Assembly (NCBI RefSeq): GCF_006345805.1
Contig: NC_043008.1
Span: 68,138,001-68,202,000 of the forward strand
DNA: 64,000 nt
DNA from: Octopus sinensis
Lineage: Eukaryota
Direction: 5' to 3'
The translations under genes and the position numbers were made by a program. The notes beneath the pieces were generated by a model. It was not told the origin of the DNA and did no database searches. It saw nothing but the letters and a program-made list of their open reading frames with translations. This document shows positions 15,956-45,840 of the stretch, piece after piece; position 1 is the stretch's first letter; each line of letters starts with the position of its first letter.

Positions 15956-17055
15956 TTCACTCTCTCTGTCTCTGCTGCTCTCTCTCTTTTGATATATATA
16001 TATATACTTAAAGATTGTTTTATGTTTGTTACATTGAATGACTTTTATAAAATATTACAGGTTTCAATGTGTATGTCTGTCTTATACTAGCTTAAAAGCT
16101 GCAATCCATGCAGCTTCTGCAGTGGGCTAATTGGGCCTGTGGCCCAAAAGTAATGAGAGCTAAATAGCATGATTATAATACGTCTATAATGACTATATGC
16201 CCCAGTGATGTTTGACCAGGAGTTAAGGATGGATGAGATTTAATTCTGTAATGTAACCACTAGTTGAATTCCAACTGTTGGAACTGTTCCCAAAGTCGTT
16301 ATCTCTACATAAAATTAATGAAGCGAATGTCATTTATCTCCCTCTTGAGCTGTAGTGTCATCTGACAAATTCCAACCAAGATGGCATGAATCAGCCAAGC
16401 TTTACTTGCTAGAAATAGCAACCCAAATGCAAAATTAGATCCCAATGTTGGATGTTCAAGGACCAATTGAAAGGCAGATTTTCAATCCCTAGATCATCCT
16501 GATTCCAAAAAGGCATAATATGTCTGTGTAGATGCAGGGGTCCCAGATGGACAGGCAGAATTTCGCCTTTATTAATATAGATTAAGAAATGAAAGTCAAA
16601 AATTAGGGAATAAGAAAGAATTGGAAATCAAAAACAGTTTGTTCTCATGTTTTGTGAGAACAAACTGTTACCTTAATTTTTGACTTTCAGTTCTTAATAT
16701 TTGATATGGTAGACATAGACATTGAAACTGGTAATGTTTTATAAAAGTCACACAATGTAACAAATATAAAACAATATTCAAACATACGTTCGTGCCAATT
16801 CTACCTTTATTTTTTAACTACAACATTTGATTTGTATGGATTCTTAACCCCTTTTCAATTACATATAGATGTGGTGACTGGCTTTAAATATATATATATA
16901 TCATCATCATTGTCATATACATGTGCCTATATGCATATGCTCACTCACCCACATATATTTGCAACCATACACATTTACATGTACATGTAATCATGTAATA
17001 TATACATACCCACAAACATGCACGCATCCATGGGGAGACAAACACAGACACACAA

Positions 17056-17120
<65 letters not shown>

Positions 17121-17289
17121 AAATATCACGTGATCACGTGACCGACCAGACCATCAGATGGTGTTACACATCGCTGGTCACAATGCGTTCGCATTGTTTT
17201 AGCCTTCAAATGACGCCACCCTGCTGGCTAAGCAAGCAGGCTAATATATATATATATATATATAGATATATATACATATACATGTACCT

Positions 17290-18185
17290 CATGTCGGGCT
17301 GTTGGTTCATCTGGTATTGTGGAGAGGAGGATGTCGAGTTCCTTTTTGAAGACATCTATTTCCACCTTATGCAGATTTCTTAATTTTTGCAGTAGGGCAT
17401 TGAAGAGCTGTGGGCCTTTGAACCCTTGACTATTGCAACATCTGGTACTGAATTTAGATGGAGTGGATGGTACTTTTGGTACAATAAAATGACGGCCAGT
17501 TCTGGCATTTGTATAACACTCAATGTCAAAGTAAAGTACTAGCCCTTCTACGATTTTCCATATGTATATTATTGCATATTTCTCACGCCTTCATTCCAGA
17601 GAGTAAAGTTGCAGTTTTCTCAGCCTATCCCTGTAGCTCATCCACTGTAATGTTTCAACCTTTTTAGTGTAGTGGCATTGGACTGCTTCAAGCTCTGCTG
17701 TTAGTTTGGCCCTATGTGGTGACCACAACTGGGAGCAGCAGTCCAAGTGACTGAGAACAAAGGTTCTCCACAGGGTCAACATAGTTTCTTGGTCTCTTAT
17801 CTTGAAGGGCCTCAGTATCCACCCTGCTAGTTGTCTGCTCTTTGCTGCCATCTTGGTAATGTGCATATGAAATGATGCCTCATTGCACATACTGATCCCC
17901 AAGTCTTTCACTGCTTGTGGATCTGGGAGTGTAGTGCCTTCAGGTCCTATAAATGTAGATTGTACTGTATTTGTGAGTTGATAGTGCAGTGCTTGAAATT
18001 TTCCAGCATTAAACCGCATATTGTTTATTTTGGCCCACTTGTATATTGAATTTAGGTCCCGCTGTAAGCTTGTGACACCATCTTGGTTTTTTATCGCTTG
18101 TGATATAATTTTGTATCATCGGCATAGCTAGTGACAGTGGCTGTCTGAGTGACTGTGGGCATGTCTAAGTATTATGAACAGTAAT
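17290..18185 (-). mobile_element. 5'-truncated CR1/L2-superfamily LINE fragment
   Basis: SYADDTKLY near 18110; ORF 17591-18019 has FNAGKF, KDLGI, LDCCSQLWSP, LRKLQLYSLE. Confidence 0.85.
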
Positions 18186-18194
18186 GGCCTCAGA

Positions 18195-18248
18195 ACAGTT
18201 ATATATTTATATTATATGTGTATGTGTGTGTGTATGTATATGCATATA

Positions 18249-18327
<79 letters not shown>

Positions 18328-18339
18328 TGTGTGTATATA

Positions 18340-18396
<57 letters not shown>

Positions 18397-18410
18397 ATAT
18401 ATGTATGTAC
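18195..18410. repeat. Long (TA)n microsatellite
   Basis: Directly visible. Confidence 0.95.
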
Positions 18411-18810
18411 AGGCGCAGGAGTGGCTGTGTGGTAAGTAGCTTGCTAACCAACTACATGGTTCTGGGTTCAGTCCCCCTGCGTGGCATCTTGGGCAAGTAT
18501 CTTCTGCTATAGCCCCGGGCTGACCAATGCCTTGTGAGTGGATTTGGTAGACGGAAACTGAAAGAAACCCGTCGTATATATGTATATATATGTATGTGTG
18601 TTTGTGTGTCTGTGTTTGTCCCCCTAGCATTGCTTGACAACCGATGCTGGTGTGTTTACGTCCCCGTCACTTAGCGGTTCGGCAAAAGAGACCGATAGAA
18701 TAAGTACTGGGCTTACAAAGAATAAGTCCCGGGGTCGATTTGCTTGACTAAAGGCGGTGCTCCAGCATGGCCGCAGTCGAATGACTGAAACAAGTAAAAG
18801 AGTAAAGAGT
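18411..18810 (+). mobile_element. SINE family I (aggcgcaggagtggctgtgtggtaag...), full length
   Basis: tRNA-like head, internal TA/TG tract, conserved 3' half; many copies in the window. Confidence 0.85.
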
Positions 18811-19601
18811 ATGTGTATATATATATATAGCTGGCCTGGGGCTATAACAGTAGACGCTTGTCCAAGGTACCACACAGTGGAACTGAACCAAGAACCACTT
18901 GGCTGTAAATTGAATTTCTTAACTACACAACCATTCATGCGATCACAATATATTATTATCTATCTTTGATGGTCATACTTGTTAAATGAGAGGACAGCCA
19001 TTGTATTTGTATTTTGATGAACTCTATGTTGTTACAGATATTGTATTATGTCAATGGAGAGGACATTTAATACTCAGTCATAGATTTCGCGCCTTTCTGT
19101 AAATAGGTTCTTACACATCCGGGTATAATTCACTACTATAAACTGTAGCAGTGGTGTTGTAGAATTCACATAATCCTGTGTTTAATTTTCCACATGTGTA
19201 AAGAAATATCTTTTTTCAGGAGAAAGAACATTCAGTATGTGTTTGGTGAACAAAGCCTCACCATTCACTACCTCTAACACTCCCCACACAGACACTTTTA
19301 CAGAAGCCTTTCTGACATATGATATTATATATAGGTCAGGTATGGTGCCAGGTGTTTAGTGGATGGAAATTGGATGTCTGTGCATGTGTTTGTCATTGTG
19401 TGTGCATGTGTGTGTGTCTATGTGTAAGGAGTGATGCCTGGTACCTCAAGACAGAGCATGCAGTTTTTTAATATTAAAGTTATATAATTGATGTAAAACA
19501 CATCTGTTATGCAACTAATATAAGTTTTATATTAAAATTTGATTGTTATTAATTCCACTGATAAGTATGTATGAATGAGTATAGATATGTATGTGTATGT
19601 A

Positions 19602-19667
<66 letters not shown>

Positions 19668-19669
<2 letters not shown>

Positions 19670-20053
19670 GCGCAGGAGTGGCTGTATGGTAAGTAGCTTG
19701 TTTACCAACCACATGGTTCTGGGTTCAGTCCCACTGCGTGGCACCTTGGGCAAGTGTCTTCTACTATAGCCTCGGGCCAACCAAAGCCTTGTGAGTGGAT
19801 TTGGTAGACGGAAACTGAAAGAAGCCTGTCATATATATGTATATATATATGTGTGTGTGTCTGTGTTTGTCCCCCTAGCATTGCTTGACAACCAATGCTG
19901 GTGTGTTTATGTCCCTGTTACTTAGCGGTTCGGCAAAAGAGACCGATAGAATAAGTACTGGGCTTACAAAAGAATAAGTCCCGGGGTCGAGTTGCTCGAT
20001 TAAAGGTGGTGCTCTAGCATGGCCACAGTCAAATGACTGAAACAAGTAAAAGA

Positions 20054-20055
<2 letters not shown>
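19668..20055 (+). mobile_element. SINE family I copy
   Basis: Colinear with 18411-18810. Confidence 0.85.
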
Positions 20056-20095
<40 letters not shown>

Positions 20096-21268
20096 TCACA
20101 CACACATTATTATCATCATCATTTAATGTCCTTTCTCCCATGCTGGCATGAGTTGGATGGTTTGACAAGAGGAGACTTGCCAGAGGATTCTGCCAGGTTC
20201 TGTCTATTTTGGCATGGTTTCTCGAGGTGGATACCCTTCCAATGCCAGCCACTCACCAGAGTGTACTGGCTACATTTTATATCACTGGGGAAGTTTGCAG
20301 GTACCCCCAATATAAGACTCCTCAACTGAGTGGGGCATAGACTAGAGTTAAAAGAAACTGTTGGTGATGATGATAATGATATTAGTGAAAGCATATGGCC
20401 TAGAGGTTAGGGTGTTGCACTCATGATCACTAGCTCATGGTTTCAGTTTCCAGATTGGGCAGTGCATTGTGTTCTTGAGCAGAACACTTCATTTCATGTT
20501 GCTCTGCAATCATTTCAAAACCTGATGTGTAGCACACTTATTCATCCGTACAGGCAATGTTGATCTGATGTGGAAAAGAGCAGAACAAGTTTCTTGCAGC
20601 ATGTATTACAGTTGTGCCAGATCTGTTGTGTTTGCTGGAAGTTTTGATGGGAATTTCCCACCAAAATTCCCTGTGATGAAACTTGTGAAAGTATTCAAAG
20701 ACAGAAGTATTTTGTCTTTCCTGTGTGTGGTGTTGTATACTGTTTTAGTAAGAATGTTATGCTGTATAAGAAGATAATACTGTGACCATCACATTTGTGG
20801 GAAGCCACTGATCACTTTTTAGTTGATGTTTGAAATTTAGGGATTTATTTAATGGCTTGGTCTTAAACACCAGACTCATTTATTCAATGGCTGTTTTGTA
20901 ACTTGGTGTGTAAGAAAGTGCCCACAGCCTCTTTCATTTAATGGCAGTTTAATAGCTTGGCATTTAAGGGTTCGTAGCCTATTTTGTTCAATGGTTATTT
21001 AGTAGCAGGGCTGGCACTAGGTGTGGGGCCTGATCAGCTTTCTACTCCACAAAAGCTGAAGATTGATGTTATATGCTTCATATAGTATACCAATCCCAGC
21101 CAAGAAAGCATTGAGGGCTCAAGGCTCCACCATTAGCCGCAATGATATACTATAAATTCATCATAGCATCCTTTACTCGAGTGTGTGCACAGGACCCGAT
21201 TTGAACAAATCTGTCTATTATGCTTAAAACCAGCCCTGTTTATCAATATTTTGTTAAGAAGTGTTCAC

Positions 21269-21655
21269 AGGCGTAGGAGTGGCTGTGTGGTAAGTAGCTT
21301 GCTTACCAACCACATGGTTCCGGGTTCAGTCCCACTGTGTGGCACCTTGGGCCAACTAAAGTCTTGTGAATGGATTTGGTAGACGGAAACGAAGCCCATC
21401 GTATATATGTATGTATATATATATATGTGTATGTGTGTGTGTATATGTTTGTGTGTCTGTGTTTGTCCCCCCAACATCGCTTGACAGCTGATGCTGATGC
21501 GTTTACGTCCCCATAACTTAGCGGTTCAGCAAGAAACCGATAGAATAAGTACTAAGCTTACTAAGAATAAGTCCTGGGGTCGATTTGCTCGACTAAAAGC
21601 GGTGCTCCAGCATGGCCACGGTCAAATGACTGAAACAAGTAAAGAGATAAAGAGT
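21269..21655 (+). mobile_element. SINE family I copy
   Basis: Colinear with 18411-18810, small internal deletion. Confidence 0.85.
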
Positions 21656-22552
21656 ATCTCTCTCTCTCTATTTTTTAAAGCTTTGTATACTACTTTTTGA
21701 CCACTGCATCTTTGTTCATAGCACCTTTATATGATTACATTTTTTACGGTAACAAGGTATTTGTATCACTACTTGTATGTCATGGACAAAATACAAAAAA
21801 AAACATTGATATATAAAGTTTTGATTTCTCAGTTTTCCAGCATTCAGGTATCAAGTGTCACCATTTCTTTTCACTAAATTCAATTTTTATAGCAAATGAA
21901 AATACTTTTAAACTTGGCTGTTTTTCAACATTATAGATACACGTTCAGAATAGATTTTTCAATCACTAACATTGTAGGTAGCATTGGTGTGCATGTGTGT
22001 GTGTAGTATTATGACTCAGTTAAGTCTTTGGTGGTGTCAAAGTTGTGGCTGTCCTGTTTTGTACTGGTGCTGTGATAAAATGGACCTAATACACTATGTT
22101 TATTATGTGTTGGGGCTAAGAGGACCTCTTACTTGTCAGAGATGTGAACAACCTCTCTGGTATGGTGTTATGATAAAATGTACCCAATGCACTCTGTAGA
22201 ACCTCCGGGTGTTAGGGAAAACATCTAGCTGTAGAAACTGCCAAGAATAAAGTGAAACTTACAAACTTGATCCTAATTCTGTGATTCACTTAGAGAGCAG
22301 CTATGACCCATCAACCTATGCCAGTATGGAAGATAGATGTAAATTGGTGGTGATGACAGCAGTAGTGGCTGCTTGTGCTGTTGCTGCTGCTGTTGTTGTT
22401 GTTGTTCATGTCAAATTTTACTAAAGTCATTGTGTTGCTTACTCTACTTTACCTGACTGAACAAAAACCATGCTCTATTTCCCTGTTTCACAGTTGAGTG
22501 GTTAGTGGTATGAAGGAGCATCCATCCAGCTGTGAAAAAGAAATAATTGTTA

Positions 22553-23859
22553 TGAGAGGCGTTCAATAAGTAATGCCCCTGACCCACTTCCCATAGCAGT
22601 AGAGCAACGAAACTTGGCATAGTTATTAGTCTTTTTCTACATAGGAACCACCCAGAGTTACGCATTTCTCCCATTGTTTGATGCAGCTCTGGAGACCGTT
22701 TTTGTAGAAGACCCCAGCTTGGTCCTCCAACCTGAACGTGACTTCAGAAATCAAGGCTGCATCATCTGGGAAACGCTTTCCTTTCAAAAACAACTTCATG
22801 ACTGGGAAGAGGTGAAAATCAGAGGGTGCAAGGTCAGGAAAGTAGGGGGATGGGGGAGGAGTTCATAGCCATACGCCTGTGCTTCTGATCTGGCGACAAG
22901 TGAGTTGTGGACCGGAGCGTTGTCCTGCAGGAGGAGGATGCCTTTGCTGATCTTGCCCCGCCTCTTGATTTTGATAACTTCTCTTAATTTCCTCAAAAGT
23001 GAAGCATAATAGGCTCCTGCAATTGTGGTACCCTTTGCCAGGAAATCTGTCATCACTACTCCGTCCTGGTCCCAGAATACTGTGAGTATGACCTTGCCAG
23101 TGGAGGGCTGCACCCTTGCCTTCTTTGGAGGGGGTGAGTCACGGTGCTTCCACTGCATTGACTGGGCTTTGGTCTCTGGATCATCGTGATGGACCCAGGT
23201 TTCATCCTGTGTAATCAGTCTTTTGAAAAATTTTGACTCATCTTCTTGGCACATCTCCAAATTCACCCTCGAGCACTCGACGCGTTCTTGCTTCTGGAAA
23301 GGCGTGAGCAACCTGGGAATCCATCTGGCAGACACCTTTTGCATATGCAAATGGTCATGAATGATAGTTTCCACAGACCTGGTACTAATCTTGACCTCAT
23401 GGGCTATTTGGCGAATAATTATGCGTTGATCTTCCAAAATGGCAGCCTCAACTTGACGGACAGATGCCTCATCAATGGCAGAAGGGGCGACCAGATCTGG
23501 GAGCTGTTTCCACAGAGTTCCGACCATGTTTGAATTCACGATGCCAGCGTTTTACAAGGTCATATGATGGGGCATCATCACCATAAGTTACTTTCATTTC
23601 ATCAAAAGTCTCCCGTGGTGTGCGTCCTTTCAAATACAAAAACCGGATCACTGCTCGACACTCAACAGGCTCCATTTCACACTTGACTCGGTTCAAACAC
23701 CTGTAAATCAGAAACCACAATTAATTCAGAGCTGTAATTTGCCACTTACTCTATAGAGATATAAATGATTGCACATGCAATCAGCTAGATCAAACATGCA
23801 ATCAGCTAGATCAAACAACTGCAAGTGGGTCAGAGGTATTACTTATTGAACGTCCCTCG
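22553..23859 (-). mobile_element. Full-length mariner (D,D34D) with frameshifted transposase
   Basis: About 33-bp TIRs, TA on both sides, 1307 bp. MEPVECRAVIRFLYLKG start, QDETWVH, QDNAPVH and DLAPSDFHLF motifs; frameshifts near 23485 and 22850. Confidence 0.92.
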
Positions 23860-23868
23860 TACAACAAA

Positions 23869-24809
23869 GGGATCTGTTCAATTTGGTGTACAGATTTTTA
23901 AATTAATTTTTTTTTAACCAAACAGTAAGAAGCTTCATATATTGGTGGAATTTCTCACCCAGAACATGGTTTATTTTGAACATTTTTGACAAAATTTCGT
24001 ATTTTAGAAGTTATTTTGTGTTAAAGCTGTTATATTTGGGTAATTTTAGCCAATCAACAACGTATATTCAGTTGAAGAAAGCTACTGCTGTTTGTGATGG
24101 TAATCAAAGAGGAACAACTTCCAGGTCATCTCTACTAAATGTCACTACTCTGTTCTATTCATATGTTGAACAAAGACAATGCCACCTTTATCCTTTCTTC
24201 CTTTCTAGTTCGCACCCTGCATTCCTTACTCTTTCTCTCCCTACTGATGTGTCTGGAAGAAAACAAAGCATATTTGTTTCATTTTACCTTCATGTTTTGA
24301 TAATGTTATTTTTAATCTAATAAAGACTTTTATATTGAAGAAATGTGTTTAACAATAACAATACATCTCATAGTTGTAAAATAAAGCATTTTGAAACTAC
24401 ATACACATCAGCAACATAAAAACCTAGCTGTGGACCTGTAGCTCTATATGGTCACTGGTTACTCCGACACGAGAACCAAGAAAAATAAAAAGCTTGTAAT
24501 ATGCAACACAGACAGTAAACAAAAAATAAAATAGAACTGAGTGGTGACATTTAGTAGAGATGACCCGGAAGTTGTTCTTCGATTACTATCGCAAACAGCA
24601 GTAGCTTTCTTCAACTGAATACATGTCATTGATTACCCAAATATGACAACTTTAACATGAAATAACTTCTAAAATACGAAATTTTGTCAAAAATGTTCAA
24701 AGCAAACTGTGTTCTGGGTGAGAAATTCCACCAGTATACGAAGTTTCAAACTGTTTGGTTAAAAAAAAAATTAATTAAAAAAATTTGTAAGCCAAATTGA
24801 ACAGATCCC
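23869..24809. mobile_element. Non-autonomous DNA element with about 290-bp TIRs
   Basis: GGGATCTGTTCAATTTGG... / ...CCAAATTGAACAGATCCC; arms ~23869-24160 and ~24531-24809; AAA on both sides. Confidence 0.8.
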
Positions 24810-26269
24810 AAATAAGTAACTCCCTTGATGTAATCAAAGGGGGAAAAAATTTAGGTAAACAATAATGAAAACAAAAAATATATATTTTCATCATACCTGT
24901 ATGTAGAAATAAATCTTGTTTAGCCTAGGGTGGTCATGGTTGAGCAGACCTATGATCAGCATAATGGTATGTAAAAGTATATATTGTTTAACCTCAGATC
25001 AGCCCTGCTTGCTCTGAGCTATGATCAGCATGTTGTTTATCCCCAGGCTGGCCCTAGTTACACAGACCTTTGACCAAAGACATTTTGGTTGTGATCATTC
25101 CTGTTTTCTTTAAACAATCAAAGACTGTATAATCCAGTGTGTTGGCATGGTGTGATTTAAGGGAGATTGGCTGCTATTTCTAGCAGGTTGATCTATTCCA
25201 TAAATATTCCTTCTTAGACTTGTAGAATTAGTTGGAAATGCTGATAGAGAAACAACAATCTGCTGGTGTAAAAGCAGCCATTATTTCCTTAACTTGTTCC
25301 AGTTTATCATGCTCTTATATCCAAGATTCAGCCCACTTAAACCTACTACCTTTTAGTTCTGCTTCTGTCTAATTTCCTTGTTTCTATAGTTTCCTGTTCT
25401 CTACCAGGAACTGTTGTACCAAACTGACTTCTCTTCTAGAATCTATGTCAAATGATTTCCGCTTGAATCTTTTTGCTAGATAGGAGGATGACAATTGGCT
25501 GGTAACAAGAATTTGGATTCTAGCTGTAAACAGATTCATTATTAGCACTATCAATGTCTTGACTATTGCCACTATCATCATCATCACCATCGTCATCATA
25601 ATACAGTAGATGACTATTTGTTTTAGTCCCCATGTTATCTCATCTGGAAGGTGCTGACATTTTGAGATCTAACCCTACCACATCTGTAACATGTCTTTCT
25701 TGATCTTGCCCAGATGCTACTACATGCTAGACTGTTTTCAGAAAAGAGCCATCTGATTGATTAGCAGAAAGTGGTTCCGAGATAGAATATTCTTTAACAC
25801 GTTCTCCTGTTAATTGAATTAAGGAAGTTATTTTAAGAAAATTCTTATTCTCTCTTCTCCATTATCTCTTATTCTTTCTCTCTCGTGGTGTTTATGGTAA
25901 CAAGTCTTGGCTCCAGTTGTCTTTTTGGGCAGAAGCCATACCAAAACAAACAGTTGATGCCTGGATAACTCTTTGGCTGACCAGCTCCTGTCAAACCAAC
26001 CAACCCATGCTAGCTTAGAAAAATGGTCATAAAATAAATGAACAAATGTATTGTGTATGTGTGTAAGTGTTTGCCCATTACACTCTGTAAAGTGTTTAAT
26101 ACTGGGAAGGGCTTTTTGTTTCAGAGATCTTATCAAAAATGGAATGTTTGAGTGACACTTAGTTCCCAACCTGTCTAGGAGGACAGTAACTTTTGAATAA
26201 GAACTGTCGTGAACCATGATGATCCATCTAATTGATGCTGATGTGGAAAGCAAACATAAAAACTACACT

Positions 26270-26495
26270 GGTAAAGGTAATGGTGGTAGTGGTGGCAGTG
26301 GTGATGGCAGTGAAGGTTTTGATGATGAGGAGGATGATGACCAACAGTGGTGGTCATAGCAGTGACGAAGATGGTGGTGGTGGTGGTTGCAATTGTGACA
26401 GTGGTGTTGGTGGTGGTGGTTGTGGTGATGATGATGATGATGATGGTTGTGGTGGTGGTGGTGGTGGTGGTCATCATGGTTGTGGTGGTGATGAT
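26270..26495. repeat. (GGT/GAT)n trinucleotide tract
   Basis: Directly visible. Confidence 0.9.
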
Positions 26496-28253
26496 AAAGT
26501 CTGGTAGTGTACAAACACAAAAGGCAGAAACTTGTTTATGCTTGTGTGTATGCACATACATTATTACTTATATAACTGTTTGTGTTACGTGCATACAAAT
26601 AAATTTTATAACCAGTTACACAAGACTTTACACCAAATTCAGAAAAACAACAGGTTCAAGTTTCTTTCAGATAAACAAGCTTATATAATATCAGTGTGTG
26701 TGTGTATGTGTGTGTGCGTGTAGATGTATATTGTCTTCTATATCTGTGTTCAACATTACTGTTGAAATAAATCTTTTGCTGAACCCAAGAGTATATAACA
26801 CTATGCATTATATAACATTGTATTATATAACATTATATGTATTTAATATTATAATGCATTGCATAACATTCCCCTAACTGTGTTTTGATAATTGCATTAA
26901 GCTTCATTTTTTAACTAAAGTTCAAATGTCAACTCCTTTCAAGAAAGGTTAAAGGTTACTCCTTAAAATTCTTTTTTGGATTCCGACTAACATTTAACTG
27001 ACCTGTTTTTTATTAGTGTTTTCATTATTTTTCATTTATTTTTTGTTAAGTTTGTATCATTTATTTATTATTTTTCGTGCTCGCTGTCTTCAATTTATTT
27101 TTCTCCAACTTTAGGAAAATGTAATTTTCTTTTCACATCTGCTTAAATTATTATTATTATTATTTGTTGTTGCTGTTTGTGAGTGAGGTTTTTGTGGAAT
27201 ATGTCACTTGTCATCTTTTTCTCATCATCATCATCATCTCTTTTCCTTTTCTGTCTTATTTTACAACATCCACTTCCAATAGCTCAGTGATGAGGTATAG
27301 AGTGTATGCAGGGCGAGAGGGGTGTCAACAAAGAGAAATATAAGTGGTGGGACTGAGAAAAAAAAAGTGGCTTGAATCCCAAATCTCAAGGTCCAAAGGT
27401 TTGGTACTACCATGATGAAAAAAAAAACCTAGAAGGCTTGGGAAAATATACAAACCAGTCGACAACAATAAGAACCACAACAACAACAAGAGACACAATA
27501 ATAAATACTAGAGCAACAGGTGACAACAACATACAGATGCAGCTCTCAAAGACTGTTTTCTGCAAAGAAAATAAAAAGAAATTGACAAAATGTGTGCAAT
27601 GAAAGGTAAAATATTTATGGTGTATGAAAGCTTTGATGCCTTTTCTTTGATGAATACACCAAAAGAGAGGTTTTTGTTGAGAAGTCATTTCAGAGGTTTT
27701 ACCACATATTTGTAGGTAGAACAACTAGATTGTGATTCCCTCTTTGAAAAATTCCTGTAGTAAAAGAGGAAGGTGTGCAAAGAAATGGTGAGATGAGATG
27801 AGATGAGATCTCAGAGCTCTGAGTTGCAATCTCTCCTCCTCTTCCTCCTCCTTTATCATCATCATCATCACCATCGCTCTCATTATCGTTGTTGTCACAT
27901 CTACATTTCCATGCTTGTCTGAGTCAAGGGAGAGTATGTTACCAGCTCTCATTTGTTTCCAAGCAAAATAATAATAATCTCCCTGTCTATTGACTAATGA
28001 ACAACCTGGAAATGTTTTTGCAGTGAAGTGGTAACAACTGATACTAAAACAAGACATGACAAGAAGCACTGTGGTGGAGTCAGCACCAGTGGCTGCTGCT
28101 CAAAATACATAATCCAATTAAGTGACAGTTTCAATGTGATGTTCTCATCTAAAAGTTGACACTCATAGGTTTTGTTTCATTTTACTCTTGTCAAGTGTCC
28201 TGTGTCAAAATTTCTTCCTCAGACTAAAAATTAACAATATTAGCATTTACTAA

Positions 28254-28485
28254 TGGCGGCAAGTTGGCAGAATCGTTAGCACGCCGGGCGAAATGCTTAG
28301 CAATATTTCGTCTGCCGTTATGTTTTGAGTTCAAATTCCGCCGAGGTCAACTTTGCTTTTCATCCTTTCAAGATCGATTAAATAAGTACCAGTTACACAC
28401 TGGGGTCGATGTAATCGACTTAATCCCTTTGTCTGTCCTTGTTTGTCCCCTCCATGTTTAGCTCCTTGTGGGCAATAAAGAAATA
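28254..28485 (+). mobile_element. SINE family II copy
   Basis: Colinear with 2669-2899. Confidence 0.85.
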
Positions 28486-28642
28486 AAATATTAGAATTTA
28501 CTGTGGCCTTCTCTTTTTCCCAATGACTCAAGCAACCATTGCCATCACTGCCGCCATACCCAATCTATATTTTACTACTTTGGTTTGTTTTTAATTTTTG
28601 TTCTATTATAAATAATACTTGTTTTGTCTGGCTAGATTAGTC

Positions 28643-29112
28643 TTGATTAAGTTAACTTATGATTGAATGCATTCCAGCCATGACCATGCCATCATTTTAA
28701 GGATATCTAGGACTACAGTATCCAATATATCTGCCATGCCCATCACTAAGGGGGTGCACTGGACAGCAGTACCCCCTCTCCAGGAGATTGCTTAAGCTAC
28801 TAGAAATAATAACCTCTAAGTTTTTTCCCCTCAATTCACAGTTCAATGTCTTCTTAGAAAGGGCAGACATCAGGCCCATCACCAGACTTTGGGATATTCT
28901 GGGTGGCTACTAATTTGTAATAATGCTAAAGTGGGCTTTCGAAATAAGTAAATCTGAGGGTACACCATTGAATAGAAAGGGGGCAGTGCTGTCTAGTGAA
29001 CCCACTTAGCAATGGGCATGGTAGACATTGGTTACTATAGTCTTAAATATCCCTAAAAAGATGGTATGGTCGTGGTTGGAATGCCTTCAATCATAATTTT
29101 ACTTTAAGCAAG
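28643..29112. mobile_element. Old MITE with about 140-bp diverged TIRs
   Basis: gcattccagccatgaccatgccatc...gggggtgcactggacagcagtacccc versus ggggcagtgctgtctagtgaaccc...gatggtatggtcgtggttggaatgc. Confidence 0.65.
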
Positions 29113-29149
29113 ACTAAACATCTACCACTAAACAAATCAAATATTGTTT

Positions 29150-29525
29150 ATATTCTTTTACACGTTTCTGTCATTTGACTGTGGCCATCCTGGAGCACCA
29201 CCTTAAAGGGTTTTAGTCAAAGTAATCAACCCCAGGACTTTATTCTTTGTAAGCCTAGTATGTATTCTATTGGTCTCTTTTGCTGACAACATTGGTTGTC
29301 GAGCGATGGTGGAAGGACAAACAAAGGCACCACACATAAATACATATAAATATATATATATATATATATATATGTCAGGCTTCTTTCAGTTTCCATCTAT
29401 CAAATTCACTGACAAGGCTTTGGTTCGCCTAAGGTTATAGTAGAAGACACTTGCTGGTGTCATGCAGTGGGACTAAACCCAGAACCATGTGATTGGGAAG
29501 CAAGCTTCTTACCACACAGCCACAA
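29150..29525 (-). mobile_element. SINE family I copy
   Basis: Reverse complement of family I, diverged. Confidence 0.75.
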
Positions 29526-29899
29526 CAAAAATTAAAAACAAACAGAACTAGAAAAATATAGATTGGGTATGATGGCAGGGGTAGCAGTGATTGCTTGAGG
29601 CAATGGAGAAAAGAGAAGGCCACAGTAAACACTAAGATTGCTTAGTTATTTTCTTGTTTTGTAGAAAAAAGAAAATAGAAAAAGAAAATTTACTGTCCAC
29701 ACCCAGCCTGTGATATAAAACAGCAAAACATCACGAAAGTGTCAGCTCTCTCTTATTTATTAACATGTCATAGAATTCTAAAGAAAATCTAAAACTGATG
29801 AATGATTGTGTTTTCAACATACGCACACACACACAATGCACACACATGTTACATTAGAAGTAATCCTCAAACAGAGTAAGTCTGTCGCATGGCCTCAGT

Positions 29900-30520
29900 T
29901 CCCTGTATGAGCTAATTCACTTACTCTCGCGACATGCAGACTGATGAAACTCTTCTACACACTCTCATCCAGTGCCCAAGCATTGCTCACTTGTGGATTT
30001 ATGTCAAACACCTGCTGTTGCATGTAGGATGGCTCCAGCTATCAGCTGAGTCCATCATGAAGATCGCCCCACTGCCTTCCTTTAGGCAGAGAGTGTTTCT
30101 TTGTCTGGTGGACTTAGCAAAAGAAGCGTGGTGGACTAGGTTGAAAGGGCTGAAGACAGACACTTTCCTTTTGGCTAAACCCTCATCAACTTTTTCAAGT
30201 TTCACTTGAAAAGTGAGGGTAGAGAGGGAAATGCTGCCTCCCAGCAATTTTGTCAAAAGATGTGTGGATAGCCCAAGTGAGCAGGCCTACTCTAAGCATG
30301 CACCTTTATATCAAGGGTAGATGAAGTGGAGAGAGCACTTACTTTAGAGATCAGGGCAATCATGGTTTTTGTAGGGTTTCCATGAGTATCCTTTGGAAGC
30401 CTCCCTCTTTTGGAGATTTATTTGTTATAATTTTTATTGTTGTTACCTTTTTACACAATTAAATCCCACACTTTTGTGTGGCATTGGCCTGTGCTGTTGC
30501 CAATCTTCTATATAAACCCT
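29900..30520 (+). mobile_element. Tx1/L1-like LINE 3' fragment
   Basis: DETLLHTLIQCPSIAHLW zinc-knuckle motif; homologous to 31480-32100. Confidence 0.7.
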
Positions 30521-30684
30521 CAGTGGTGAATAAAGAAAAGATTGAAATTCCACCCAGGTTGACTTTGCCTTTCATTGATTCAGGGTCGATAAATTAAGTA
30601 CCAGTGAAAAACTGGGGTCAGTGTGATTGACTGGTCCCCTCCCCCAAAATTTCAGGCCTTGTGCTGTTAGTAGAAAGGATTATT

Positions 30685-30706
30685 ATTGTTGTTGTGGTTG
30701 TTGTTG

Positions 30707-30738
<32 letters not shown>

Positions 30739-30795
30739 GGTGGTGGTGGTGGTGGTGGTGGTGGTGGTGGTTGTGGTGCTGTTGTTGTTGTTGCT
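30685..30795. repeat. (GTT)n-(GGT)n compound trinucleotide repeat
   Basis: Directly visible. Confidence 0.95.
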
Positions 30796-31479
30796 GACAG
30801 AATTGTTAGTAGTTTGGGCAAAAAGCTTTGCTGCATCTCATCCATCTTTACATTCTGCCAAGGTTGACTTTGACTGTCATCCTTTCAAGGTCAGTAAAAT
30901 AAGTACCAGTCAAGCACTGGGTTGATGTAATCACCTTACCCCCTAGCAGTGGTGGCAGAGACAGTAGTAGTAGGGATAGTGTGTTCTTTAAAAATGCAAC
31001 AGATTTTAGCAGGAAAAAAAGTAATGCTAATATCGAAGGCAGAGAGGAGGAAAATAACGGTGACAGAGTGGCAACAGTGGAAATGACCACAATTCCACCA
31101 CCACTACCAACAGTAACAGCAGCAGCAGCAGTTGTAACAATAACAAAAATAAAAGGTTTGCTGATGTAATGAACACAAAGAAAGAGATGTTTGTCATACC
31201 ACTCAAAGATAAAACGCGTGGACTCAGAAAAGCAAAAGATATCCTTAAATTTGAAGATGATAAGGCTGCTGTGCTCACACATCCTGAAATAATAGAGGCA
31301 AAATAGAGGAAGAAGACTATTTTGGATGTGAATCATGCAAAACTTGGAGAGCTGAAATAGCATCCATCAGTCATTTGAGAAGGCCCTCAGAGAAATTTTA
31401 ATAGATGTGGCCCATATATAGAGAGGGATTCAGTTTGCCAGCATTGCAGTCCTCTTTAAAAGTGAGAACCTCACTCAAA

Positions 31480-32100
31480 GACACACAATGTCACCTCAGG
31501 GAGCTCTGCCAGTGCAAGACAAGTTCTACAGACACAGAAGTGCTGTCAGATGGACCTGTCCAAGGTGTGCGCAGGGCGATGAAACTGTCCTGCATGCACT
31601 CACCCAGTGTCCATGCATTACTGACCTGTGAAGCTTTGTCAAACAGCTGTTGTCATATGTAGGATGGATCCTGTTATGAACTAGTCCATTGTGAGGATTG
31701 CCCCACTGCTTTCTTTTGGCTGGGAAGAAAAGGCAGTTGTCCTCTGCCTGATGGCTATAGCAAATGAGGTAGTGTGGTGGACAAGGTTGAAAGGACTGAA
31801 GACAGACACTTTCCTCTTCAGCTGAGCCCTCATCAACATTTTCAAGTTCCACTTGAAAACGAAAGTGAGGGTAGAGAGGGAAGTACTGCCCCCAAGTAAG
31901 TTTGTTGAAAGGTAGATGACTGTTGCAAAAATGGCTTGTGTGAATCAGCCTACTCTGAATATTCGTCTGTAAGCTGGAGCAGTTGAGAGGACATGGTGTG
32001 CCTACATGGTGTGGCCTTGGAAGTTGGGGTGACCAGGATTTGCGGGGTGCCCTGGCTGGTCCTGGGTGAAACTACCCCCTATTGTGGAATTTTGTTGTCT
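31480..32100 (+). mobile_element. Tx1/L1-like LINE 3' fragment
   Basis: GALPVQDKFYRH..CPRC..DETVLHALTQCP in a + frame with stops. Confidence 0.75.
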
Positions 32101-32789
32101 AACACTTTTGTTAACTCAACTAAGGGCAGTGCTCCAGCATGGCCGCAGTCAAATGACTGAAACAGGTAAAAGAGTAAAGAGTAATCTTTTTACCTCTATG
32201 ACCAGGTCTTGACATTTCTATGGTATTCATTCTAATATCATTTGGTGTTGCAAAGTCTATGATCTTGCATTGTTTTTTTATGTCTTCTACAATCATATTT
32301 GTTTTGTTTTTGTTTTTTGCTTCTGTAATATGTTCTGTCTTTATGGAGAAATCCTATAAAATTCAACAATTATGATTCACCATTACAGCCTCTGGCTTGT
32401 GTTCATACCACCTTTCTGTTATTTTGAATCCACTTACACTTATAATGATACTCATCATCATCATCATCACCATCACCACTACTACCACCATTGCAATCAT
32501 CATCATCATGATTAAGGCTTAAGATGGTGAGTTGGCAGAATTGTAGCAGTATTTCATCTGTCTTTACATCCTGAGTTCAAATTCTACCAAAGTCAGTTAT
32601 GCCTTTCATCCTTCCAAGGTAGATAAAATAAGTACCAATTGAGTGCTAGGATCAATGTAACCTGGTTTCCCACCTCTCAAAATTGCTGACCTCATGCCAG
32701 AATAACAAAAGTGTTATTATTCCTTCATTCGCACAGTGATGATCTTGTTAACACTGGATTGTTTAATTGACTCCTAATCAAATTGTGTA

Positions 32790-32995
32790 ACAGATAGTAC
32801 ATTCTGCAGGATATTTACTGCTCCCAAAAGTGTTGCATTTTGCAATGTTGTAATGCTGAGACAGATTCCAGTTTTGCCGAGGTGTTTCTAAAGGTTTTTC
32901 ATCACTGACCCAAATACTCCACTCACAGTTGGTACCACTTTTGCTTTCATATTCTTCATTCTCTTGATATCTGTTCTCAAGTCTGTGCAGTAAGA
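32790..32995 (-). mobile_element. R4-clade LINE C-terminal fragment
   Basis: YCTDLRTDIKRMKNMKAKVVPTVSGVFG...LQNATLLGAVNILQNVL, parallel to the end of the element at 54035-55240. Confidence 0.65.
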
Positions 32996-33013
32996 CTTGA
33001 AAATAGATATTGA

Positions 33014-33290
33014 GAGAATGTGGATCATGAAAGTAAGAGTGTCAATGCTGATGATGTCACCATAGTGGTATCAGACAATAAACACATTGAGATAATTGAC
33101 ACTGCTTTCAGGGACAAGACGGTATCAGAAACAAAGCTTAACAAGGAAGAAAATCCATGCAGTCCAACTGTGTCATTGGGTATATGCCTGTAAACCAGAG
33201 ATAAGAAACTGAGAAAAGGTACCTTCACCAGAAGTCAGGATACCCGTGGTTTGGTAGATGGCCCTACAAACAGCCCTCAAATGTCTCCTC
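33014..33290 (+). mobile_element. L1/Tx1-like RT fragment
   Basis: NADDVTIVVSD..IEII..AFRD..SETKLNKE resembles the YADD...GAKLNxEK region of L1/Tx1 RTs; internal stops. Confidence 0.5.
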
Positions 33291-33464
33291 CCGATTGAGG
33301 ATTACACCTTCTTAAATTGTTTTTTCTTTTGTTTACACACAAAAGCCTTACAGCATATCATGTGCACACACATATTTAATATTTTTTTCTGTGCCGTCCA
33401 TAATGTTTTTCTTTATGCAAACACTCTGTGGTCAGTAAAGAAATCATCATCATTATTATTATTA

Positions 33465-33925
33465 TTAAGGTTGCAGAATTGTTAGCATGCCAGGCTAAAT
33501 GCTTAGTGGCATTTCATCAGTCACTATGTTCTGCTGGGGTCAACTTTGCCTTTCATCCTTTTGGGCGTCAATAAATTAAGTACCAGTTGAGTACTGGGGT
33601 TGATGTAATCAACTATTCCCCTTCCCCAAAATTTAAGACCTTGTGCCTTTAATAGAAAGGATTATTACTAAAATTAAGTACCAATGAAACACTGGGGTCG
33701 ATGTAATCAACTAGACGAGCTGGCAGAATCGTTGGCACACTAGGCAAATTGCTTAGCAGCATTTCATCCATTTTTACATTCTAAGTTCGAATTCCACCGA
33801 GGTCAACTTTGCCTTTAATCCTTTCAGAGTCAATAAAGCAAGTACTAGTTATGCACTGGGGTCGATGTAATTGACTATCTCCCTCACCCAAATTCTAGCC
33901 CTTGTGCCTATAGTAGAAATTGTTG
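33465..33925 (+). mobile_element. Cluster of two to three SINE family II copies just upstream of the MYORG-like terminal exon
   Basis: Repeated ttgcctttcatcctttt...aagtaccagt...ggggtcgatgtaatc blocks. Confidence 0.75.
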
Positions 33926-34145
33926 TTGTTGTTGTTGTTGTTGTTGCTGTTGCTGCTGCTGCTTTTGTTGTTGTTGTTTACGAAAGCCTCCTCAGATTAT
34001 TTAATGAGACCTCATTTGGTTTTATGAAAATGCTTTACCTCTTTAATATTTAATTACTTTGTATTAATTGTATTAAATGCTCCAGATTCAGACAGTCATT
34101 TTCTACCATGGCTAATTATATGTTTATATTTTATCTGTTCATTAG

Positions 34146-36080
34146 ACTCCAAGTAAAGAAAACTCCAAACTGCTTAAATACACTGTGGCCACACTCTTCA
34201 TATTGATTCTTGCTGGTTTCATATCTGTAAGAGTTCTTCATGCAAGACAAACCAATGCTATTTTGGTTGGCAGACTTATCCATTTCTCTGAAGCTGAACG
34301 GAAAGTACAACTGTTGAATAAATTTAAAGGAATAACTCTAACTGGATGGTTAGGAATCAACCTCACATCTAGCTTTCATTTTTGTCAACCGAAGATTAAA
34401 GAACAAAGCATTCAAGAATTATGTTACCAAAGTCAGCGCTCTACCAAGCTACAAATACTTCATGAAGAAAAAGGCGGTCTGTATTGCTATTCTATAAATT
34501 GGGAAATTTCACAGGTAGAAGAGTTCCTTGATTGTTACCAGATAAAATCTTCTAATTGGTATGGAATGAACATTGGTTCAAGGCAATCATGGCCACTGAA
34601 GAATTTTTCTACTGATCATATTCCATTTTCAACAGAATCATCAGATATATTGGGTTCTGTATTAGAACCACTTTGGATTAGTTCTGATGGTGTTGGAATC
34701 TTTGTAAATGACTCACATCCTTTTGAAATTAGCTGGAATTCTTCTGATGATGGATTATTTTGTCTTCTGCCAGACCTAAGACAGCCATATCCCGACCAAC
34801 AACTCCACTATTATCTGTGTCAAGGTAATGATATCAGAGATACTTATGTCAACATGAAAAAGATATTTTTACCTGTGAACCAAAATGAACTAGCAAAGAA
34901 CAATAAACTTTTAAAAACAATGATCTGGTCTTTTGAAGAAAATTCCAGGAATATTTCTATACAAAGTGCCATCCTTAATTTCATTAATAGTAAATATACT
35001 CACACTTATAATGATACTTACATCGAATTGAATAACAATTGGCAACAAAGTCAGGGAGATTTCACTTTTGATGCCAAACAGTTCCCAAATATCTCTGAAT
35101 TCCTTCGTCAAGTTGATTGTCATAATATTGGTATTATATATCCAATAAGTCCTTATTTCCATTTCACTTCCAAAGAATTCAATGTTGGAATGATGTCAGG
35201 ATATTTTATAAGGGATGATTTGAGTGACGTTACAAAACTTGTCAAATGGCAAAATAAACAGATGGCTATTATAGATGTTTCCAACCCAAATGCTTCAAAA
35301 TGGTATTTGGACAAATTGCTCCACCTTTCTACAAAGCCAGAATTCGGAGGATTCCGTAATTTAGCAATTGGACAGAGCTACATTCCAAAGAACATTCGCT
35401 TTTATAACACAAGTTACACTATAAAAGATTACGTTGATAAAATGGCGTCATTCTACAAAAACAGTTCAGAAATATTTTATTACGATTCCAAATTAAACAA
35501 ACATAAACTATTAGTGATCAATGTTAAATCTATGTTTGTGTCAAGAGGCAAGTATACCTGTATTAATAATGTCATTGATCAGGCACTAACTGTTAGTATG
35601 TTAGGCTATCCGTACATAACTCTTTCCCCTGTAAAATTTCCCAATATTACTCAAGAACTGTACATGAGATATATCACCTTGGCTTCTTTTATGCCAGTTG
35701 TCCGTTTATCATACAGCAGGTACTTATATAATCACACAACTTCATTACATTTACAAAGCCTTATCACTCTCCATCGAAAATTAGTGTACAAAACTGTTGA
35801 AGGCCTTTCTTCAGACATCAAAGCAGGCCTTCCAATTATTCGCCCCCTTTGGTGGGTCAACCCTAATGATAAAACAACTCTCAACATCTCAGACCAATTT
35901 CTTATTGGCAATAAGTTAATGGTTGCCCCCAATTTATGTGATAGCATCAAAAAGCGTGATATATACATTCCAGCTGGAAGATGGAAAGATCTTCAGTCTG
36001 AAGTAGAAATTCAGGGCAAAACTTGGTTATATAATTATCCAACTGAAACAAATTTTGTTGCAATATTTCAGCTCCTTTAA
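34146..36080 (+). CDS. MYORG-like: Terminal coding exon of a MYORG/KIAA1161-like GH31 glycosidase-family type II membrane protein (probably non-catalytic)
   Basis: Stop-free frame of 644 aa after a pyrimidine-rich acceptor (ttttatctgttcattag|ACT, phase 0; the in-frame TAG is part of the acceptor). It contains a TM helix (VATLFILILAGFISVRVL), MYORG-type motifs (EPLWISSDGVGIFV, GDFTFDAKQFPN, LTVSMLGYP, ELYMRY, PIIRPLWW, DQFLIG..LMVAP, YIPAGRWKD) and about 10 N-glycosylation sequons. Confidence 0.9.
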   Translation, partial: TPSKENSKLLKYTVATLFILILAGFISVRVLHARQTNAILVGRLIHFSEAERKVQLLNKFKGITLTGWLGINLTSSFHFCQPKIKEQSIQELCYQSQRSTKLQILHEEKGGLYCYSINWEISQVEEFLDCYQIKSSNWYGMNIGSRQSWPLKNFSTDHIPFSTESSDILGSVLEPLWISSDGVGIFVNDSHPFEISWNSSDDGLFCLLPDLRQPYPDQQLHYYLCQGNDIRDTYVNMKKIFLPVNQNELAKNNKLLKTMIWSFEENSRNISIQSAILNFINSKYTHTYNDTYIELNNNWQQSQGDFTFDAKQFPNISEFLRQVDCHNIGIIYPISPYFHFTSKEFNVGMMSGYFIRDDLSDVTKLVKWQNKQMAIIDVSNPNASKWYLDKLLHLSTKPEFGGFRNLAIGQSYIPKNIRFYNTSYTIKDYVDKMASFYKNSSEIFYYDSKLNKHKLLVINVKSMFVSRGKYTCINNVIDQALTVSMLGYPYITLSPVKFPNITQELYMRYITLASFMPVVRLSYSRYLYNHTTSLHLQSLITLHRKLVYKTVEGLSSDIKAGLPIIRPLWWVNPNDKTTLNISDQFLIGNKLMVAPNLCDSIKKRDIYIPAGRWKDLQSEVEIQGKTWLYNYPTETNFVAIFQLL

Positions 36081-43800: not shown

Positions 43801-44634
43801 CCTTCATTGTCTAGCATAAAACTTCCCCTTTAGAGGTCATAGTTATGAAAGCTGCATGGTGACCTCACTAGTGCTCATGGCACAGAAAAAGCATCCAGCC
43901 ATAGATACCATGCTAAAGCAGACACTGAGCATGATGCAGCCCTTGGGCCCATTGGATCCTGTCAAACCACCTAACTTATGCCAGCGTGGAACATAGATAG
44001 ATGGTGCTAATAATGATGATGACTTGGTGCCTTGGGTATCTTTAGTGCAAACTACTCTGTTAAAAATTTTCAAACCAGGTCTCTAGTTTGTCAGTACATT
44101 CTTGTCTCTCACACACATCTATCTCGGAGTCCCTGTGAAAGTTTTGGCCTCTACCTTCTCTTCTGATTAAAAGATAAAATAGAAATGAGTTCTATTTTAA
44201 AGTAATTTTGAAGTTATGACCTCTAGAAAAAAAAAAATCAGCGTGTGTGGGATAAACAAAACATTCCTTTTATGAAGTTAGATTTTTTCAACAGCTATAA
44301 TGTAACCAAGGTCAAACTGGTGAGGTCAGATTGCGTACAACTTGTAACAGTTATTTACTATTATTACTGTGTAATACATTGTTCTGTACAATAAATTTTA
44401 CTCTGTCGGAGTGTCAAATTAAACAGGTGGATAGAAATGCCAATGAGTTATTTGGGATGTTATAAATGTGTCAAGATATTTTTATGTCAAATTAGGTTTC
44501 CTTATAATATCCTTTGATTCGTAAAGTAATAAAAATAAAATTATTGTAATATTGTAAAGTTTAAGGCAAGCAAGAAATGTTAGCATACTAGGTGAAACAC
44601 TTAGTGGTATTTCGTCTGTCTTCACGTTCTGAGC

Positions 44635-45840
44635 AGGCTGACCAACCTCTGGTGAAATTCTTTAGACTCAGGTTATATACCAAAACGGCTCCTATCCCAG
44701 TTTTCAAACAGGGAAACAGATCCCTCACAGTCAACTGTCGCCCAATCTCACTCACCTCTCAAATCTTAAAAGTGTTTGAAAGAGTGGTAAGATCAAGGAT
44801 AGCTGCCTTCCTGGAGATCCACAAACTCCTAAATGCAAATCAGCATAGCTTTCACTGTGGCAGGGACTGTCCAACACAGCTCTTACACCTCATTGAGGAT
44901 ATACTAAAAGCCTTGGGAACAGGTTCGAACTCCGATGCCATATATCTTGACTTCAGTAAAGCATTCGACAGAGTTGACTATAATATCTTATTCTCAGAAC
45001 TAGCAAATGTTGGAATCTGTGGAAAACATCTACACTGGATTGAGTAGTTCCTGGTGAATAGAACACATGTTGTGGTCGATGGAGTCCACTCAAGCCCTGC
45101 AAAAGTCACCAGTGGTGTCCCTCAGGAAACTGTCTTGGGCCCACTCCTCTTTGTAATCTATATAAACGACCTTTCCAACATCGCAAAACACTGCAAAGTG
45201 AAAATATTTTATGACACTATGCTCCAGAAAATTATCGATGAAGAAGACCAAACTTAACTCGTCTGATCTATATGTGGTGTGTCAATGGGCGTACAAAAAC
45301 AAAATGCAACTAAACGAGGGAAAATATGAGCTGATCCATTTTGGAAGAAAGACTATACTAAAACAGCCATACATTCTTCCTTCTGGGGAGCCGCTCACAG
45401 CATCTGATAATATCAGAGACCTAGGAGTAATTGTTGTGATCTTGATTACTGGGACCACCTTAAAGCCTTAAAACTCCTCTCTCCAGCGTCACCACGAGCA
45501 GTACATCATTTGCATGATATGGAGAATATACCACCAGAATTGCCCAAACGACCTGAACATTAACTTCAAGGTTCATCCCTTGCCCAATTCAGGATCACAA
45601 CATATAGGTACACTGCGACACAATTTGTCCCGAAGCTGATCTAAGAGGAAAAGGATCTCATCACCTTTAAACGGAGCCTGGACATCACCTTTAAATGGAG
45701 TCTGGAGTGAGTTGTATCCATACCTGGATACAACTCGCTACTTGAATGGACCATAACACAAAACTTGACTTAAAAAGGATTTAGATAATCCTATCAGGTG
45801 GCGCTATTATGTCAGACATGGCCTGGACCAATCTTTGGTC
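44635..45840 (+). mobile_element. Decayed CR1/L2-superfamily LINE (RT and 3' end)
   Basis: PVFKQG..RPISLTS, NQHSF, YLDFSKAFDRV, GVPQETVLGPLLFVIYINDL; YADD lost; internal deletions. Confidence 0.85.

Follow-up and report, generated by a model that had tools for sequence, protein, structure and literature searches.

The gene and the fold of its product

A stretch of 64,000 nucleotides from the genome of Octopus sinensis (contig NC_043008.1, positions 68,138,001 to 68,202,000 of the forward strand; from here: the window) contains two coding exons of a gene for a protein related to MYORG, a member of glycoside hydrolase family 31 (GH31). Between window positions 34146 and 36080 on the forward strand lies an open frame of 644 codons with its stop codon at 36078-36080, the length that the original prediction, made from the letters of this stretch, had given. 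Its translation matches, at 100% identity, residues 140-783 of a 783-amino-acid RefSeq protein named "myogenesis-regulating glycosidase" [Octopus sinensis]. The original prediction had regarded this frame as an intact MYORG-like protein that lacks both catalytic aspartates and is nonetheless selected. Here we report that the gene is functional and under strong constraint, and that in alignments the loss is wider than the two aspartates, reaching all ten positions which in human MYORG are catalytic or contact the substrate.

The frame at 34146-36080 is the terminal coding exon and carries residues 140-783 and the stop codon but no ATG of its own. Directly 5′ of it there is a polypyrimidine tract with an AG acceptor (tttatctgttcattAG, followed by ACT; cattAG/ACT at the junction). 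The gene comprises at least three coding exons, of which the window holds two, this one being the last. Coding exon 2 is located at 15508-15895 on the forward strand and contributes the last base of codon 10 and then residues 11-139 (tblastn, 100% identity over 11-139), with the acceptor ttgcAG/T and the donor AGT/gtaagt; its product is an acidic, low-complexity cytoplasmic tail. By their coordinates, the two exons are separated by an intron of 18.25 kb (15896-34145, forward strand). On chromosome CM016870.1 of GCA_006345805.1, the exon with the ATG (MTEPRKNSS) precedes the first position of the window by about 18.5 kb. The last exon of Argonauta hians likewise has 644 codons and an AG acceptor, and a decapod genomic contig contains this exon too, with 644 codons and the acceptor at the position found in octopus. 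Residues are numbered here within the terminal exon, residue n of the exon being residue n+139 of the full protein (e.g. Leu406 = Leu545).

The terminal exon encodes, in this order, a transmembrane helix, a stalk, an N-terminal β-sandwich, a (β/α)8 barrel and a C-terminal β-sandwich. The single transmembrane helix (TVATLFILILAGFISVRVL; 34182-34238, forward strand; exon residues 13-31, full-protein residues 152-170) has a Kyte-Doolittle maximum of 2.28, and an AlphaFold2 model of the exon product contains a helix spanning exon residues 4-37 that covers this segment. Since the hydrophobic helix at 152-170 precedes the GH31 ectodomain in this single-pass protein, we infer a type II membrane topology. 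The Pfam profile of the GH31 barrel (PF01055) scored 59.7 bits (cut-off 23.5) and that of the GH31 C-terminal domain (PF21365) 63.3 bits (cut-off 24.4), the latter at exon residues 561-634, i.e. window positions 35826-36047 on the forward strand, with an E value of 2.9e-17. The best sequence match in PDB was human MYORG (phmmer, E 8e-64 over exon residues 109-641).

The AlphaFold2 model, calculated from a 55-sequence alignment, reached a mean predicted local distance difference test score of 87.6 and a predicted template modelling score of 0.86. Its best Foldseek matches were the MYORG structures 7qqg and 7qqh with template modelling scores of 0.82-0.86, and all of the top 50 matches were GH31 proteins. 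As modelled, the GH31 fold is thus intact. For comparison within the group we used five cephalopod cluster representatives, namely O. sinensis, Argonauta hians (79% identity) and three decapod-type sequences (55-57%). Nine N-glycosylation sequons in the ectodomain and eight cysteines are invariant among them. The retention of the transmembrane helix, the sequons and the structural motifs, which had been noticed in the octopus sequence before, is hence borne out by the hydrophobic helix, the nine invariant sequons, the Pfam domains, the model and the Foldseek search.

In its general layout the octopus protein resembles human MYORG (NET37, KIAA1161; structures 7QQF, 7QQG and 7QQH), which is a type II single-pass membrane glycoprotein as well, shares the N-terminal β-sandwich, the (β/α)8 barrel with an insert and the C-terminal β-sandwich, and also has its ectodomain encoded in one large exon. 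The two proteins are only 23-28% identical, and in the octopus protein the catalytic pair and the galactose and glucose ligands are replaced. It moreover differs from human MYORG by a tail of about 150 amino acids with dileucine and YxxO motifs.

The former active site

MYORG was established as an α-galactosidase in 2022, with the specificity Gal-α1,4-Glc, and the structure paper names ten catalytic or substrate-contacting residues of the human enzyme together with their roles (PMC9491548). The corresponding octopus residues were read from a MAFFT alignment of 55 sequences and from hmmalign to a hidden Markov model of 120 canonical MYORG proteins. The motifs given for human MYORG in the original prediction match the structures 7qqf and 7qqh (FKFDAGE, LEIDDMY, LPDMVGG, RLVDRD), and the octopus counterparts GGFRNLAIGQ (35346-35375) and NVKS (35520-35531) were located as quoted there.

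The nucleophile Asp463 at the end of strand β4 is replaced by Leu406 (Leu545 of the full protein; 35361-35363, forward strand). In this assignment phmmer, MAFFT and hmmalign agree, leucine is found in all five cephalopods, and strand β4 of the AlphaFold2 model spans exon residues 400-405, immediately before Leu406. Retaining GH31 chemistry requires an aspartate at this position of β4 (PMC9491548). A misalignment concealing the nucleophile was considered and rejected: the three aligners all give Leu, and the aligned segment around Leu406 contains no Asp or Glu conserved throughout the five cephalopod sequences. Glu398, eight residues before Leu406, occurs in octopods only.

At the acid/base site, the motif R517-L-V-D520 of human MYORG, which combines a ligand of the 2-OH group (Arg517) with the acid/base residue (Asp520), is replaced by N459-V-K-S462 (35520-35531, forward strand). 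MAFFT and hmmalign read R517 as Asn and D520 as Ser462, the register that had been proposed earlier by counting, while phmmer pairs D520 with Asn459, so that the register is ambiguous by three residues. Strand β6 of the model covers exon residues 457-460, and these strand boundaries favor the Ser462 register. In both registers O. sinensis has neither Asp nor Glu at the acid/base position. In the Ser462 register octopods have Ser and decapods Pro, and the position of R517 is Asn or Asp among the cephalopods. The proposed loss of both catalytic aspartates was thus confirmed, with Leu as the nucleophile counterpart and Ser or Asn as that of the acid/base.

The remaining contacts are replaced as well. 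The aspartates Asp353 and Asp354, which bind the 4-OH and 6-OH groups of galactose (PMC9491548), align with Asn296-Asn297 (35031-35036, forward strand) within IELNNNW at 35022-35042; among the cephalopods the first is Asn or Thr and the second Asn, Ser or Asp. Trp321, which determines galactose specificity, is Glu in O. sinensis (Glu, Asp or Gly in cephalopods), and Trp426, a 6-OH ligand that also stacks in the +1 subsite, is Gln (Gln, His or Arg). Lys461, a ligand of the 3-OH group, is Arg in all five cephalopods, the only conservative change among the replacements in the -1 and +1 subsites. Arg504, which contacts the 2-OH group and the +1 sugar, corresponds to Asp447, again in all five, and Asp213 of the +1 subsite is Ser in O. 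sinensis and Ser or Thr among the cephalopods. In addition, the LPDMxGG loop is shortened and its aspartate lost, ITLSPVKF standing in place of ILPDMVGG; the replacement of this motif and of IDD.W had been pointed out correctly before. Since not only both catalytic residues but the entire -1/+1 subsite is gone, the earlier view of a non-enzymatic protein was strengthened; the structure prediction shows a retained fold, and the alignments with human MYORG show non-acidic residues at the catalytic positions.

Among the five cephalopods, three of the ten former pocket positions are invariant, compared with 46% of the positions across the whole exon. The old pocket is hence less conserved than the protein around it, which argues against a conserved ligand site at the same place.

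Family placement, selection and transcripts

When 1.84 billion cluster representatives were scanned with HMMER, 642 proteins were obtained at E < 1e-30, and the cephalopod cluster (1394 bits) stood far above all others (at most 460 bits). We aligned 156 sequences, consisting of the 155 library proteins listed, in which the cephalopod and P0006 queries are included, and human MYORG as the reference. The nucleophile aspartate is kept in 81 of the 156 and both catalytic aspartates in just 61. About half of the nearest MYORG-like representatives thus have no nucleophile, and by this alignment the loss of catalytic residues is common in the MYORG-like subfamily. The alignment contains several separate degenerate clades, one of them with Pro at the acid/base position, as in the NET37 paralogues of a sandfly.

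In neighbor-joining trees the cephalopod clade received a bootstrap value of 100%, and the octopus protein was placed outside the clade of canonical MYORG with equal support (100%). A node with 81.5% joins the cephalopods and one further sequence with gastropods (Lottia, Gigantopelta, Plakobranchus, Batillaria) and bivalves (Mizuhopecten, Sinanodonta/Potamilus); as these trees were built from simple distances with long branches and without an outgroup, this node is plausible but not proven. The nearest clade thus consists of Lottia XP_009056707, Gigantopelta XP_041366764, Plakobranchus GFN88622, Batillaria KAG5708576, Mizuhopecten XP_021346137 and Sinanodonta KAL3866781. These gastropod and bivalve "MYORG-like" or "KIAA1161-like" proteins share just 22-25% identity with the octopus protein. 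The gastropod relatives carry short basic tails, while the bivalve relatives have an N-terminal [DE]xxxLL as in octopus. Leucine at the nucleophile position is also present in the four gastropods and in the scallop Mizuhopecten. Because the change from Asp to Leu takes at least two nucleotide substitutions, this distribution favors one old event, and a single ancient loss of the nucleophile appears plausible.

The sister group is a second degenerate clade, in which Thr or Ser occupies the nucleophile position and to which another Octopus gene and sequences from Lottia, Nucella, Aplysia, Lymnaea, Tegillarca, Ylistrum and Sinanodonta belong. Both degenerate clades together were split from canonical MYORG in 100% of the neighbor-joining replicates. 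Canonical MYORG with all ten residues intact was found in a chiton, gastropods, bivalves, a brachiopod, annelids, echinoderms, hemichordates, amphioxus and vertebrates; a further canonical clade (P0279, P0282, P0286, P0292, P0294) is nested among molluscs. The ENA and Logan samples to which this clade was traced did not coincide with the sample containing the decapod gene, and blastn of the flanking DNA revealed no repeats in common. The split and the presence of canonical MYORG in other molluscs indicate that the octopus gene is an ancient non-catalytic paralogue rather than a recently disabled orthologue, in line with the earlier designation as a paralogue. Judged from these trees, its lineage is probably older than the split of cephalopods, gastropods and bivalves and probably one of two ancient non-catalytic MYORG-like lineages of molluscs.

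The second Octopus gene (XP_029647573 in O. sinensis, XP_014773149 in O. bimaculoides) lies on a different chromosome, is about 27% identical to the gene in the window, and likewise encodes a MYORG-like type II protein without the nucleophile, here with Thr/Ser instead of Leu (motif FHFTYDG, Asp to Thr). By their motifs, then, neither of the two known MYORG-like genes of Octopus looks catalytic. A search with the canonical profile returned no cephalopod among the best 120 of 952 matches, with four annotated octopod proteomes in the database, a result that is only suggestive. One member of the sister clade, the scallop protein XP_060062906 of Ylistrum balloti, is named "SITS-binding protein-like" by NCBI. 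The name is presumably that of a membrane glycoprotein of the Torpedo electroplax cloned in 1989; this NCBI name hints that the Torpedo protein may be part of the same assemblage of MYORG-like pseudoenzymes.

Loss of catalytic residues in this family has a precedent in insects. In a study of GH13 and GH31 proteins from 2021, the sandfly NET37/MYORG paralogues LlGlyMyo1/2, type II proteins of this family, "seemed to lack hydrolytic activity" because Pro takes the place of the proton donor (PMC8063059). They belong to an insect lineage and, unlike the octopus protein, have kept the nucleophile while the acid/base is Pro; the sandfly loss is apparently independent of that in molluscs. A survey of mollusc glycoside hydrolases counted MYORG-type genes as GH31 enzymes, the catalytic residues not being considered (PMC7560691), and our literature search found no paper on MYORG-like pseudoenzymes of cephalopods or molluscs. 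The original prediction had named this frame the best candidate for undescribed biology. The non-catalytic paralogue stands, but it is not special to cephalopods, given the leucine in gastropods and a scallop, the second degenerate clade and the sandfly precedent.

The last exon bears the signature of selection. By the Nei-Gojobori method (NG86), the ratio of nonsynonymous to synonymous substitution rates (dN/dS, ω) of this exon was 0.102 between Octopus and Argonauta (bootstrap 95% confidence interval 0.073-0.136) and 0.077 between the two closest decapods (0.056-0.104); for the barrel alone it was 0.088. Overall ω amounted to 0.05-0.10 with confidence intervals below 0.14, while in comparisons between octopods and decapods the synonymous sites were saturated. 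These values, together with a frame that is intact in octopods and decapods, agree with the selected gene that had been proposed and point to purifying selection since before the octopod/decapod split. Moreover, two of the decapod sequences (P0003 and P0005) come from sequencing-run contigs of about 3 kb that lack introns and continue without a break over exon junctions that are interrupted in genomic DNA; they hence represent spliced mRNAs in two decapod data sets. We conclude that the gene is functional and strongly constrained rather than decaying. MYORG-family genes also occur on long animal contigs in assemblies that are filed as metagenomes in ENA (ERZ21867824 ctg117977l; ERZ250xxxxx), and a decapod cephalopod is clearly the source of one of these.

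The DNA around the two exons contains simple repeats and probable remnants of mobile elements. Within the 18-kb intron there is a mariner-type Transposase_1 open reading frame of 246 amino acids (22796-23536, reverse strand, E 2e-22), probably a transposon remnant. Downstream of the gene, a fragment of an RVT_1 reverse-transcriptase reading frame (44592-45044, forward strand, E 4.5e-10) resembles a remnant of a retroelement without long terminal repeats. A GIY-YIG nuclease domain occurs in a reading frame of 168 amino acids at 4082-4588 (reverse strand, E 4e-7), which we presume could be a fragment of a Penelope-like element. A (GTT)n/(GCT)n microsatellite at 33925-33975 lies just 5′ of the last exon and a (CT)n microsatellite at 15925-15950 just past the exon 2 donor, and a TA/CA-rich simple-repeat tract of about 900 bp occupies 59711-60642.

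Possible functions of the octopus protein

The cytoplasmic tail of about 150 amino acids is rich in acidic residues and far longer than the 0-26 amino acids of canonical proteins. It contains EDSALL (15554-15571, forward strand), an acidic dileucine-type motif [DE]xxxL[LI] that is aligned in all cephalopods, with the counterparts EVDHLL in decapods and EWDKLL, EHEKLL and ENDKLL in three bivalve relatives. A Yxx-hydrophobic motif, YATV (15803-15814, forward strand), is embedded in the block SQYATVDSxDSVRFAEHTTVFTVPR, which is conserved in cephalopods; at this site the cephalopod sequences read YATV, YGTV or YSTV. Both kinds of motif, acidic dileucine and Yxx-hydrophobic, are classical sorting signals recognized by adaptors, and their occurrence in the tail suggests a post-endoplasmic reticulum itinerary. 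In the ectodomain, Cys611 and the cysteine in VAPxLC(E/D) are common to the whole Leu-type clade of cephalopods, gastropods and bivalves and, like the long tail and its motifs, are gains relative to canonical MYORG.

We consider it likely, with a probability of about 0.8, that the protein is a non-enzymatic, membrane-anchored binding or scaffold glycoprotein descended from a MYORG-type GH31 α-galactosidase. Its ectodomain would be a folded, glycosylated binding or scaffold module. Given the replaced residues, galactose is probably not bound in the way of MYORG, and instead of α-galactose the partner may be a protein or some ligand other than a sugar. The [DE]xxxLL and YxTV motifs of the acidic tail would probably steer the protein from the endoplasmic reticulum to endosomal, lysosomal or plasma-membrane compartments. 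Non-catalytic glycosidase folds under selection are known from CD98hc and rBAT (GH13), Klotho (GH1) and the chitinase-like lectins (GH18), of which CD98hc and rBAT are type II single-pass proteins too. Belonging to unrelated GH families, these serve as a working analogy only, and a juxtamembrane cysteine of the CD98hc type is absent from the octopus protein, in which there is none between the transmembrane helix (exon residues 13-31) and Cys80, about 50 residues further on.

Several points weigh against this view. The lack of hydrolytic activity is read from the sequence alone, and the absence of a replacement acid near the old pocket is judged by alignment; Argonauta has Asp459 and Glu461 near the acid/base position. 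The 81.5% node and a single ancient loss carry the reservations given above. Expression of the O. sinensis gene itself is supported by the RefSeq model and by transcripts of its relatives only, and the putative sorting motifs are short, possibly fortuitous, and missing from the gastropod relatives.

An open frame without its own ATG and without catalytic residues might at first sight be a chance frame, an annotation artefact or a decaying pseudogene. With 644 stop-free codons in DNA of 34% GC, splice sites that join the upstream exon exactly and an exon intact in Argonauta and three decapods, the probability of this is next to nil, and the ω of 0.05-0.10 with confidence intervals far below 1, together with spliced transcripts in two species, refutes it. 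The strong purifying selection on the barrel (ω 0.088) might instead preserve an enzyme that uses other catalytic residues or another chemistry on a different substrate, and the invariant Asp447 at the position of Arg504 and the well conserved strand of the former nucleophile (FGGFRNLAIGQSYIP compared with FGGLRSLAMGQSYIP) would suit such an enzyme. Leu, however, cannot stand in for the β4 aspartate required by the retaining mechanism (PMC9491548), no acid around Leu406 is conserved in the cephalopods and the substrate-binding residues are gone too, so that we regard continued catalysis as very improbable.

Pseudo-glycosidases of other families serve as lectins, and the old active-site pocket might hold an α-galactoside or another sugar without cutting it, as in chitinase-like lectins. 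The intact and confidently modelled fold and barrel would permit this, and the phmmer register even yields at the acid/base the Asp-to-Asn change by which substrate was trapped in human MYORG (PMC9491548). The replacements, however, go beyond the catalytic pair and affect every residue that forms hydrogen bonds or stacks in the -1 and +1 subsites, and the pocket, with its three invariant positions out of ten, is less conserved than the exon as a whole. The lectin option of the original prediction is weakened by these losses, and we rate it as unlikely. Many pseudoenzymes act on their own active paralogues, and an equally unlikely alternative would be a regulatory partner that forms a heterodimer with active MYORG through the insert-region interface and modulates or localizes the enzyme. 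Human MYORG dimerizes via hydrophobic residues of the insert region (PMC9491548). In the phmmer alignment this interface is mostly hydrophobic in octopus (F402 corresponds to F, V406 to M, L419 to V, L422 to L and Y397 to F), but I429 is changed to Q and E407 to M. Canonical MYORG coexists with the Leu-type clade in other molluscs, but no canonical MYORG of a cephalopod was among the best 120 of the 952 canonical matches, and the long tail with its sorting-type motifs suggests a compartment other than that of MYORG, which resides in the endoplasmic reticulum.

A more far-reaching version of the binding or scaffold glycoprotein is conceivable. Coleoids might have lost active MYORG and kept the two non-catalytic paralogues, the one in the window having been rebuilt into a receptor or ancillary subunit of the endosomes or the plasma membrane. 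We hold this scenario to be doubtful. If true, the gene would be the GH31 counterpart of CD98hc or Klotho, with a new tail bearing dileucine and YxTV signals, a new cysteine pair and a hydrophobic former pocket.

Pseudo-glycosidases are common, and a catalytically inactive relative of MYORG is not surprising in kind, the loss of catalytic residues in NET37/MYORG having already been reported in an insect. Nevertheless, by its residues the RefSeq label "glycosidase" of the octopus protein is almost certainly wrong, and a large share of the invertebrate "MYORG-like" entries, and many database entries under the name "myogenesis-regulating glycosidase(-like)", are probably non-glycosidases as well. 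Counts of GH31 "enzymes" in mollusc genomes would thereby be inflated, as would the transfer of functions from human MYORG (brain calcification, myogenesis). The octopus gene and its relatives would define a group of membrane-anchored GH31 pseudoenzymes that is conserved and very old, probably older than the cephalopods, and in which a new non-catalytic use of the fold might reasonably be sought.

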